A DNA stretch of 28,508 bases from Zygophlyctis sp. KS116 (Eukaryota > Fungi > Chytridiomycota). Shown here one piece after another: positions 6,889-24,126 of the stretch; within the stretch, counting starts at the first letter, position 1; the number at the start of each line of letters is the position of its first letter. The stretch lies in assembly GCA_054661495.1 (NCBI GenBank), contig BAAFSQ010000122.1, positions 1 to 28,508 of the forward strand, in the 5' to 3' direction. A program made the translations under genes and the position numbers. The notes below the pieces were generated by a model that did no database searches, was not told the origin of the DNA, and saw nothing but the letters and a program-made list of their open reading frames with translations.

Positions 6889-7173
6889 TTAATTCCATAC
6901 ACCTCTGTTAATCTGACCATCCTGAACAATTTTAGGGACTGAGTAATATGAATCTGCATCAAGAGATTTTGTATATTCTGCCAGACTGATCTTTCTAGGT
7001 TTGGGTTGAGAACTGGAAGTGATAGATTGTGCTTTTTCTACATTGACTGGATATTTTGACATTACAGAATTAAGTAGTATTTTATTAGGGGTTTCTAGAG
7101 AGTTGTAGTCAAAGAATGGTTTTTTAGGTTGTGCAGGGATCTTTTTAGAAGTTTTACTCATTGCTGATCCCAT
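6889..7173 (-). CDS. Small hypothetical protein with MGxxxS N-terminus
   Basis: ATG-initiated 94-aa ORF filling the gap, divergent from the RING1-like gene. The 3' end is uncertain. Confidence 0.55.
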   Translation of the reverse strand: MGSAMSKTSKKIPAQPKKPFFDYNSLETPNKILLNSVMSKYPVNVEKAQSITSSSQPKPRKISLAEYTKSLDADSYYSVPKIVQDGQINRGVWN

Positions 7174-7239
7174 TTTCTCGTCTCAAAATCGCGCAAATTT
7201 TGTTTACAGTTTTTGGGTGCGGAAATTATTACAACTATA

Positions 7240-8136
7240 ATGTCAATCGTCTATGAATTGTAAATTTGATCAAGGATTTATTAATAGTAATATAAAAACA
7301 ATCACAAAGGAACTCTCTTGTCCGATATGCCTAGGTATTTTATCAAAGACGACAGTAGTAGATCAGGTAAGTTGAAAGTGCCACAAGATTTAAACAAAAG
7401 TGTCTTCATCGGTTTTGTTATGATTGCATTAATACTGCTCTAAGGCTTGGGTATAAAAATGTTTCTAAATATTAGGAAAAAAGAATGTCCGAGTTGCAGG
7501 GCGCCATGTCCGAACAAAAGAAATCTTCGGATTGATACCAAATTTGATAATATTATTTCTAAATTATGTCCAGACAATGCCAAAGAAGAAGGAAATATTC
7601 CACAAGGAAATATTGTTTTATCAAATAAGAAGGTATATTTTGGAAAGGTAATGAATGATCAGCTTCCTAAAAAGATCTTGGCTAGATCAGGGAAAATTGA
7701 AAAGGCAGTACATGGTAATGTAAATGATCACAAAAGAAATTTGAAATTGCTAAAGTTGGCTTCTCTGGAATCAACGCAATCAATCAGTACTACATCTAAT
7801 GAGGAAGAAAAGGGTGATAACAGTCCAATAGGATTTATTGAATTTAATCCAAAAACTAGTTGGAATGTTGAAATAGAACTAATACCGGATCCAAGAGAAG
7901 TAGATAATCAAAAAAGCATATCTGTTAGGACTCTAAGAGAATGTACGGGTCGGCATTTGGCCGATTGTTTAAAGGCACATTTGGGCTCAAATAAGCAAAT
8001 AGCCTTCTTTTTTAATGATGGAAAAGGTTTTGTTGATATAGATTTAGAGAATGAATTATCAAAATTGGTAAGTGATGATTCATTTAATGCAAAGGCATTC
8101 ATTAATTTTTTGCCAATTTACTACAAATTTATTTAG
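7240..8136 (+). CDS. RING1: RING1/RNF2-like E3 ubiquitin ligase (PRC1 core): C3HC4 RING plus putative C-terminal RAWUL domain
   Basis: Splicing introns 7260-7287, 7367-7400 and 7451-7475 gives ELSCPICLGILSKTTVVDQCLHRFCYDCINTALRLGKKECPSCRAPCPNKRNLRIDTKFDNIISKLCP. The C-terminus VEIELIPDP...T..HLADCL...LPIYYKF resembles RAWUL. Confidence 0.82.
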
Positions 8137-13602: not shown

Positions 13603-15478
13603 ATGGTCAGTTCAAAGACAAGAGATGATTCTAAAACAGGATTTTATCCTTGTAGTAATGTCGCCCTAGGCAATTCAACCGAAAAACATATTCTGCAGGT
13701 GCCACAAGGGCTTTTGGACATTTACTCAAAAGCTGAAGATTTAATTCTAAACAAGGATTTTAATCATGGTGTGGTATTGCTTGAATCGGTCGTCAAGGCT
13801 TTTGATTGCTCTCAGTCTCAGGCTCTATTGGGATTTTGTTTGGAATTCGGTTTAGGAATCACTCAAGACTTTAAGGCTGCAGAAAAACTTTATGCTGCTG
13901 CTGGATTGCAGGGAAATGGGCTGGCTTGTGCTAGGTTATCTTTTCTTAGGAGATATGGTAGACCTGGGGTGATTATTGACAGGATGGAGGCAGAAGAATG
14001 GGTAAAGAGGGTTGGTTCAGTGGCTAGTTTAAGTTGGTTGGTAAAAGCTGCTGATCAATTTAATTTACCTGCTGCATGTTATGCTTTAGGAGTATGTTAT
14101 CATGATGGGTATTTAGTTTTTTTTCTTTAATCAATTTAGAATTGGAGTCCCAAGAACACCTAAAATGGCTGTCCGTTATTATCAAAAGGCGGCTGATGCA
14201 AAAGAACCTAGAGGTCAAGGAATTCTTGGTTATTGTTATGGTGAGGGATTTGGAGTTGAAAAAGATATTGCAAAAGCATTTGAGTTATACACTGATGCTG
14301 CAAATCAAGGGGAATCAGTATCAATGTATAATTTGGCTCACTGTTATGAAGAAGGAAATGGTGTACCAAAAGATATTGAAAAAGCTTTATATTGGTATGA
14401 AAAATCATCATGTTTGGGAAACTGCTACGCTCAAAATTCTCTAGGTTATATGCATGAAGAAGGTCTGGGAGTCAAAAGATCAGAGGAAAAAGCAGTATTT
14501 TACTATAAACTTTCGGCTGAACAAGGTTATCCTTGGTCTCAATGTAATCTTGGATTCTGTCTTCAAAATGGAATTGGGATTGAAAAAGATGAATCCTCTG
14601 GAGCTTATTGGTATCAAAAGGCGGCAATGCAAGGTCATTCTAGAGCACAACATAATTTAGGACATGCTTATCAGTATGGAATAGGAGTCTCAAAAGATGA
14701 AGCAATGGCGGTTGAATGGTATAAAAGATCTGCAGCTTCTGGAAATGCATTTGCATTACATTCTTTAGGATACTGTTATCAATATGGAATTGGAGTAGAA
14801 CCAGATGAAACTCTCTGTTCTAAATTATATAGGGAATCTGCACTATTAGGACATGCTCCTGCTCAATTATCCCTTGGGTGCTGCTACAGAAATGGAATCG
14901 GTGTACCAGTAAATGAAAATGAAGCATTTAAATGGATAAGATCATCTGCTTTGGGAGGCAATGATTTGGCTCAAAACACTCTTGGTCATTTATATGAAGA
15001 TGGAATTGGAACTATAAAGAATCTTGATAAAGCAGTATATTGGTATACCGTCTCTGCTCGTCAAGGAAATGCCTGGGCTCTTACAAACCTTGCAATAATG
15101 TATTCTGAAGGAGTCTTTGTAGAACAATCTTATCCTGAAGCTCTTCGCTTACTAAAACTAGCAGCTGATCAGGAACATTCAAGAGCTCAAGTTCGACTAG
15201 GAGAACTTTATTTTTATGGAAAAGGCATTAATGTAGATTATAATCAAGCATATCATTGGTTTAGCCGTTCTGCTGATAATGGTTCAGTTCCTGGAATGAC
15301 ATGGGTAGCCCAATGTTTGGAAAGAGGACTTGGAACATCATCATCTCTTGAGAGTGCAGTTGAATGGTATGAGAAAGCAGCTTCTTGGGGAGACCAATCT
15401 GCCTCTGAAAGATTGCTTGTTCTAACAGCTAACCCCTGTGTATCATCAATGAATGGACATGTCGCACCTTCTGCCTAA
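13603..15478 (+). CDS. Sel1-like repeat protein
   Basis: More than ten AQ..LG.CY..G.GV..D...A..WY..AA.QG repeats; intron 14109-14139 joins the two ORFs. Confidence 0.92.
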
Positions 15479-23231: not shown

Positions 23232-24100
23232 CTAAAAATCAAGAAGAGGAGATAAAACATCATGTAAATCAAAAAAACGAGCCAATAATCTTGCATTTTC
23301 TAAAGGAATCCTTAATTTAAAATTATTATAAATTACCAAGTTCCTTGAAGCTTCCAATAACCTCCTTGAATTATTTGAACGTTTCCACTTATACTCTCCA
23401 GAGTTTTCCTTTTTTTCCTTCCTTTACAAATTCCAGCAGCTTTTAGTATTGTAGTTGCATTCACCCAATCATCACTTTTCCTTCTAATTACAGTCACTTG
23501 ATTCACATCCATTTCATAAACTTCTGCAACAGAGTAAAACGCTTGACGAACTCTTCTACAATCGCTATTATCGTCTAATTTTAATCTTTTAAGTGTATGT
23601 AATTCAGAATCTTGAACTGATTGATTTGCATTAAAAGATTTAGAATCCTTAATTTTTGTTAGATTCTGAAGGATCTGCAATCTTTGTTCTTTCAGAGTCT
23701 TATTATAAGAGTTAAACAAGTGTAAGAAATTTTCAACCATGATCATTTTACCAGTATTAGTCTCTAGTAATTCTGATAATTGAGATTCATCGTGTTCTAA
23801 AACCAATGACTTGTTTGGACTTAAAAAATCATAAATAATCCCTTGCAGATCCTTTACAGAGAATGGAATCCCACCACCCTTATTTTTTGAATTATTTTCA
23901 TCCAATTTCTGTTTTAGTTTAATTTTTTTTTCCAGATCAAGTTCTTGTTGTTTGATTTCATCATTTGCCAAATGCAACAGCTTATTCTTTAGTATACTAG
24001 GGTCTTGGCTTGGTTGAGATTTTACCCATTCATTCAAGAAATTTTCATGGGGATTATGAGAATGTGTGTAGTAGTAAGTGTCTGATTCTCCTAAATCCAT
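23232..24100 (-). CDS. KilA-N/APSES (Mbp1/Swi4-like) DNA-binding protein with the domain at the C-terminus
   Basis: AFYS..EVYEM...VIRRKSDDWVNATTILKAAG...IQGGYWKLQGTW; a small intron near 23311-23336; last exon IPLENARLLARFFDLHDVLSPLLDF-TAG. Confidence 0.88.
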
Positions 24101-24126
24101 TGGTTGATTCCAGTATTTTGACAAGT

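Follow-up and report, generated by a model that had tools for sequence, protein, structure and literature searches.

The gene at positions 7240-8136 on the + strand of the window (the whole 28,508-nt stretch of DNA analysed here) is almost certainly an orthologue of RING1/RNF2. Comparison with orthologues resolved it into 6 exons separated by 5 GT-AG introns, predicting a protein of 250 aa followed by a stop codon. Exon 1 (7240-7259, 20 nt), which starts at the same ATG and has the same length in the syntenic orthologue L069, is followed by intron 1 (7260-7287, 28 nt). Exon 2 (7288-7366) encodes the first zinc-binding cysteine pair, the equivalent of I53 (7325-7327) and a Gly at the position equivalent to D56 (7334-7336); residue numbering here is human, and was taken from 9dby_L and the RING2 alignment. 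Intron 2 (7367-7400, 34 nt) leads to exon 3 (7401-7450), which supplies the central C-x-H and C-x-x-C of the RING together with the helix bearing the R81 equivalent. Beyond intron 3 (7451-7475, 25 nt), exon 4 (7476-7632) contributes the last cysteine pair, the R91 equivalent (7498-7500), the equivalents of the nucleosome-binding residues K97/R98 (7516-7521) and the post-RING helix. The exon phases across introns 1-3 thereby give one continuous frame through the C3HC4 RING. Exon 5 (7663-8067), which holds the linker and, starting near 7858, the larger part of the RAWUL domain, is flanked by intron 4 (7633-7662, 30 nt) and intron 5 (8068-8094, 27 nt), both of which are in frame. Lastly, exon 6 (8095-8136) encodes the final RAWUL beta-strand (model strand 87-93) and the stop codon, and is conserved with synonymous changes in the orthologues L036 and L069.

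All five introns recur at identical positions in L069, with lengths of 25, 25, 26, 25 and 28 nt, and five of the six exons are of identical length in the two genes. Identity to L069 was 50-58% inside introns 1-4, 69-90% in the exons and 75% in intron 5. The RING cysteines are invariant between the two genes, and exon 3 displayed 5 synonymous and 0 non-synonymous changes, leaving its protein sequence identical. Intron 4 is bounded by the same GT/AG positions in L035 (26 nt), L036 (28 nt) and L069, and intron 5 likewise has counterparts in L035 (27 nt) and L036 (31 nt). Because these counterparts of introns 4 and 5 mostly break the frame, with stops or frame breaks in intron 5 of L036 and L069, the comparison supports the five-intron model encoding the predicted 250-aa protein. 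The original prediction named introns of 28, 34 and 25 nt, and all three are present with GT-AG borders; its total of three was wrong, having missed those of 30 and 27 nt. The three-intron model was dropped, since these two further in-frame introns align with the frame-breaking introns of the orthologues. The 5' end of the L035 scaffold (L035:1-56) could not be aligned to exon 3 or intron 3, and is probably misjoined. The start codon lies only 17 residues ahead of the first RING cysteine, and the same start occurs in L069; thus the long N-terminal arm of animal and Spizellomycetales RING1, a usual though not strictly defining feature that precedes the RING in P0021, P0014 and P0018 and is absent here, appears to have been lost. 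In the human structure, the N-terminal arm of RING1 wraps BMI1.

The surrounding gene order of SMC5, BolA, U1-70K, RING1, kinase and GCN5 is conserved in relatives, which come from lake and other metagenomes, and probably reflects the ordinary synteny of a compact genome. A head-to-head neighbouring ORF (window 6889-7173, - strand) begins 66 bp away from the start of RING1; near 7218-7231, upstream of RING1, lies a short motif that is conserved in L069 and possibly belongs to a shared bidirectional promoter. On the other side, the downstream neighbor stops 17 bp from the 3' end of RING1. Elsewhere in the window, an ORF at 14165-15478 contains at least 11 Sel1 repeats, and a weak KilA-N/APSES-like match at 23333-24124 (- strand) fits a fungal transcription factor. 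The genome contains IFT46 and several chitin synthases, by which gene content the host is a flagellated, chitin-making, zoosporic fungus, most likely a chytrid.

We compared the RING with known families using individual exons and naturally occurring reading frames. Pfam scans of single exons were blank, save that in another scan exon 3 alone exceeded the zf-C3HC4 cut-off with 23.1 bits, and a word search using the RING half returned no match. Searching PDB with the reading frame at 7477-8133 returned 10 matches, every one of them to RING2/RING1B. The same frame gave 31 matches among 1.8 billion representatives, mostly RING plus RAWUL proteins or fragments thereof, including a protein of the chytrid Phlyctochytrium arcticum and one from a choanoflagellate, and the top Atlas cluster carries C3HC4 plus RAWUL. 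A RING1 profile built from the hits of this long frame ranked RING2 (~1e-36) ahead of BMI1 (1e-17) and of BRCA1 and RAD18 (1e-10 to 1e-11). Scores on the RING1 and PCGF profiles were 21.4 and 11.8 bits for exon 2, 32.0 and 16.0 bits for the stop-to-stop piece containing exon 3, and 54 and 15 bits for the exon 4 piece, exons 2 and 3 constituting the independent part of this test. Exon 4 was also the best genome-wide match of the RING1 profile (E 1.8e-13). The RING1 identity that had been proposed from similarity to animal RING1B and plant RING1A is supported: all PDB matches were to RING2, and for each exon piece the RING1 profile outscored the PCGF one. Residues I53, R81, R91, K97 and R98 are kept, as is the post-RING dimerization helix in the RING2 alignment, with Gly in place of D56; the latter is conserved only in metazoans, and Gly occupies this position in the active Arabidopsis RING1 (PMC10638273). 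The central region, the linker and the RAWUL sequence are divergent.

The C-terminus had been predicted to be RAWUL-like, and several approaches (hhalign, a genome-wide profile, Foldseek and VIA) bore this out, identifying a RING1-type RAWUL domain, a ubiquitin-like beta-grasp, at 7858-8133 (+ strand). By hhalign, a profile of the window sequence and five relatives matched one of twelve RING1 C-termini with a probability of 95.8 (E 8e-9). The RING1-RAWUL profile found a single match in the 12.7-Mb assembly, namely this gene (C122:7858-8013, E 2.8e-4). A model of the C-terminus that was computed with an alignment from the natural read-through of intron 5 reached a pLDDT of 81.6 with beta-grasp topology. 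Ranks 1-8 of the Foldseek search were all the Ring1B C-terminal domain, the TM-score against Ring1B being up to 0.81, and VIA likewise placed Ring1B first (Z 12.6, rmsd 1.9, 88 aligned), followed by the RAWULs of PCGF1 and BMI1. These fold comparisons are partly circular, as the alignment held RING1 RAWULs, while the hhalign and genome-wide profile results are independent of the model. A single-sequence fold of the C-terminus gave a pLDDT of 54 and no meaningful match. Pfam RAWUL failed to match the C-terminus of the window gene; Pfam also misses divergent members of this family (PMC10638273).

A candidate partner lies on a 1044-bp contig of the same assembly (G000:C1142:639-1044, - strand; L002), where the contig end cuts off all but the 3' half of a PCGF gene with its RAWUL. 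This gene is interrupted by a probable 25-nt intron, and its RAWUL half agrees less well with the RING1 profile than with a PCGF profile, whose references were obtained by scanning public metagenomes for a motif. A PCGF-type RING is located upstream in the relatives L136, L138 and L137, the last of which is 98% identical where the two overlap; L136 and the RING1 orthologue L069 share a sample of origin. The 5' half was not found in the assembly, and for this reason the PCGF RING profile matched other RING families only. Taken together, the PCGF half on this contig and the RING in its relatives indicate that both PRC1 core subunits are present among the predicted genes, supporting the proposal of a retained minimal PRC1 that had been made from the RING1 and RAWUL identity. 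Codon-pattern hits that match a PCGF-like RING motif exactly occur at G000:C54:4494-4514 (+ strand) and C575:2508-2528 (- strand), neither of which was matched by the PCGF profiles. The one Pfam RAWUL match in the genome (L001) was considered as a PCGF and rejected, as it is WDR48-like.

We likewise searched the assembly for other Polycomb and chromatin genes; the assembly is gapped and these searches had no positive control, so that their negative results serve as hints. Among 18 SET matches (L051-L068), none was recognized as EZH-type and none as Clr4/SUV39-type, and Pre-SET was blank; the types seen were Set1, Set2, Ash1-like, two Set9/Suv4-20 and SMYD-type. It is possible that this lineage has lost both H3K27 and H3K9 methylation, or that the genes fall in assembly gaps. 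For SUZ12, the VEFS, CXC and MCSS searches of this gapped assembly were blank, and Zn_SUZ12 gave one weak match under the cut-off. RYBP/YAF2 gave no match in the incomplete assembly, and RYBP has been reported as lost in fungi (PMC10638273). No BAP1/ASX eraser was found in the incomplete assembly, ASXH yielding nothing over the cut-off; the only UCH-family deubiquitinase detected was of the YUH1/UCHL3 type (L089, G000:C87:32568-33167), with no UCH37 or BAP1. The lysine pair of the H2A C-terminal tail is kept. These lysines are kept also in fungi without PRC1, and hence are not diagnostic. Two further observations concern histones and SET proteins. A second histone H3 (L038, G000:C540:2458-2802) combines a canonical fold domain with an N-terminal tail that is longer and divergent and whose K9 is apparently replaced, and the paralogous SET proteins L053 (G000:C65) and L055 (G000:C39) carry a hydrophobic signal- or membrane-like N-terminal segment that is unusual for SET enzymes.

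The original prediction presented PRC1, a complex that most fungi have lost, as a surprise in a fungus, a point that the literature does not support: PRC1 subunits have been described in Rozella, Gonapodya and the chytrid Spizellomyces, so that not all fungi lost PRC1 (PMC10638273). Its suspicion that surveys might already list fungal orthologues proved correct, Spizellomyces RING1 (SPIPUN007233) and PCGF (SPIPUN008085) being included in published alignments (PMC10638273 supplements 36 and 34). No CBX, PHC or other accessory subunit is known except in animals (PMC10638273). In a mass-spectrometric study of histones from 19 eukaryotes that covered Spizellomyces, some holozoans were the only species with detected H2A K119 ubiquitylation (bioRxiv 10.1101/2021.11.30.470311), writers and marks co-occur poorly (bioRxiv 10.1101/2021.11.30.470311; PMC10638273), and PRC1 catalysis outside holozoans and Arabidopsis was left undecided by the PRC1 survey (PMC10638273). 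Searching the literature, we found no functional work on PRC1 in fungi. PRC1 in early-branching fungi being known already, this locus adds two modest twists, the lost N-terminal arm and the apparent lack of PRC2 and Clr4.

The explanation towards which we lean, and which we place slightly on the probable side, is that this gene supplies RING1 to a PRC1 core of two subunits that monoubiquitinates H2A at limited loci without PRC2. By analogy with the human and plant enzymes, the RING1 RING would pair with the PCGF RING, a Ubc4/UbcH5-type E2 would be recruited via the I53 surface and R91, and R98/K97 would dock on the nucleosome acidic patch, such that the lysine pair of the H2A C-terminal tail might be monoubiquitinated at limited loci, e.g. 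repeats or life-stage genes. Instead of RYBP/CBX, the two RAWULs may contact partners specific to this lineage, and the complex would not need PRC2. The components of this proposal merit different degrees of confidence: by the same analogy, a RING1-PCGF heterodimeric E3 ligase is probable, H2A as its substrate is an even call, and a role in silencing is tentative. The retention of I53, K97 and R98, of a Gly at position 56 as in the active Arabidopsis enzyme, and of the H2A lysine pair are in its favor. Counting against it, H2AK119ub went undetected except in holozoans and Arabidopsis, even though the sampling included Spizellomyces with its RING1 and PCGF; the window protein is further marked by its missing N-terminal arm, divergent central region and blank Pfam RAWUL, and no BAP1/ASX was found in the incomplete assembly.

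A credible, if somewhat doubtful, alternative is that the pair is a true RING1-PCGF ubiquitin ligase whose main job is other than H2A silencing, such as modification of non-histone substrates, DNA-damage signalling or service as a non-catalytic chromatin scaffold via the RAWUL domains. PRC1 genes are widespread while H2AK119ub has been seen only in holozoans and plants, with writers and marks coinciding poorly, and this distribution would fit such a ligase, as would the loss of the N-terminal arm and the failure to find PRC2, RYBP and BAP1 in the assembly. However, this fast-evolving lineage has retained R81 and the nucleosome-docking K97/R98 throughout, and a rare ubiquitin mark can escape bulk histone mass spectrometry. 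We consider it quite improbable that the protein is RING1-derived but has ceased to pair with PCGF and now acts alone or is decaying, with each gene retained independently of the other. The missing arm, the divergent linker and RAWUL, and the degenerate motifs of the more distant orthologue L073 would accord with this, but several relatives conserve the two genes in intact form, the genes co-occur in one sample, and the post-RING dimerization helix of the RING1 protein is conserved. Membership in another C3HC4 family (RAD18, BRCA1 or TRIM-like) or a false splice model, towards which exon 2 alone points in matching TRIM RINGs slightly better than RING2 with non-significant E-values, is scarcely credible and is largely refuted by the RAWUL evidence, the RING2-only matches of the long frame, the five intron positions conserved in L069 and the separate RAD18-like gene in the genome (L016).

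Within the favored reading of an H2A-directed two-subunit core, a bolder version is that a micro-intron lineage with an arm-less RING1 plus PCGF, and with neither PRC2 nor Clr4/SUV39, uses H2A monoubiquitination as its main repressive histone mark. We regard this as unlikely; if true, it would be a naturally occurring case of fungal silencing by PRC1 alone. Short of that, a further compact chytrid lineage joins the small number of fungi in which both PRC1 core subunits are known to persist, and the gene illustrates how annotation from ORFs overlooks such cases if the RING is divided by micro-introns. The wider question is what role PRC1 plays where neither H2AK119ub nor PRC2 is seen. The minimal arm-less RING1-PCGF pair would provide a convenient in vitro test case. 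The culturable Spizellomyces, already known to have PRC1, is the better system, and the window locus does not itself open the question.

Among known systems, the RAWUL of WDR48/UAF1 (DUF3337) has the same fold and is represented by one copy in this genome (L001). In contrast to the window protein, it is carried on a WD40 repeat rather than a RING, and L001 scored 10.1 bits on the RING1 RAWUL profile, compared to 23.5. In Spizellomycetales (Spizellomyces, and Phlyctochytrium arcticum KAI9098702.1, or P0021), RING1 likewise combines a RING with a RAWUL of the same signature, and both core subunits occur in one genome. Compared with P0021, the window protein is shorter by ~110 residues and has no N-terminal arm, and five micro-introns interrupt its gene. 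Published alignments additionally list EZH, EED and SUZ12 for Spizellomyces (PMC10638273), whereas EZH and SUZ12 were not found in the incomplete assembly studied here. With human RING1B/RNF2-BMI1, the window protein shares the RING sequence, I53, R81, R91, K97, R98 and the RAWUL fold; it differs in having Gly at D56, non-basic residues at K92/K93 and no N-terminal arm, and RYBP was not found. Plants have PRC2 and detectable H2Aub, whereas for the fungus studied here H2Aub is a prediction and the incomplete assembly yielded no EZH or SUZ12. Arabidopsis RING1A/B, acting with BMI1A-C, forms a core without the animal accessory subunits and carries Gly at the D56 position, yet is active on H2A (PMC10638273).
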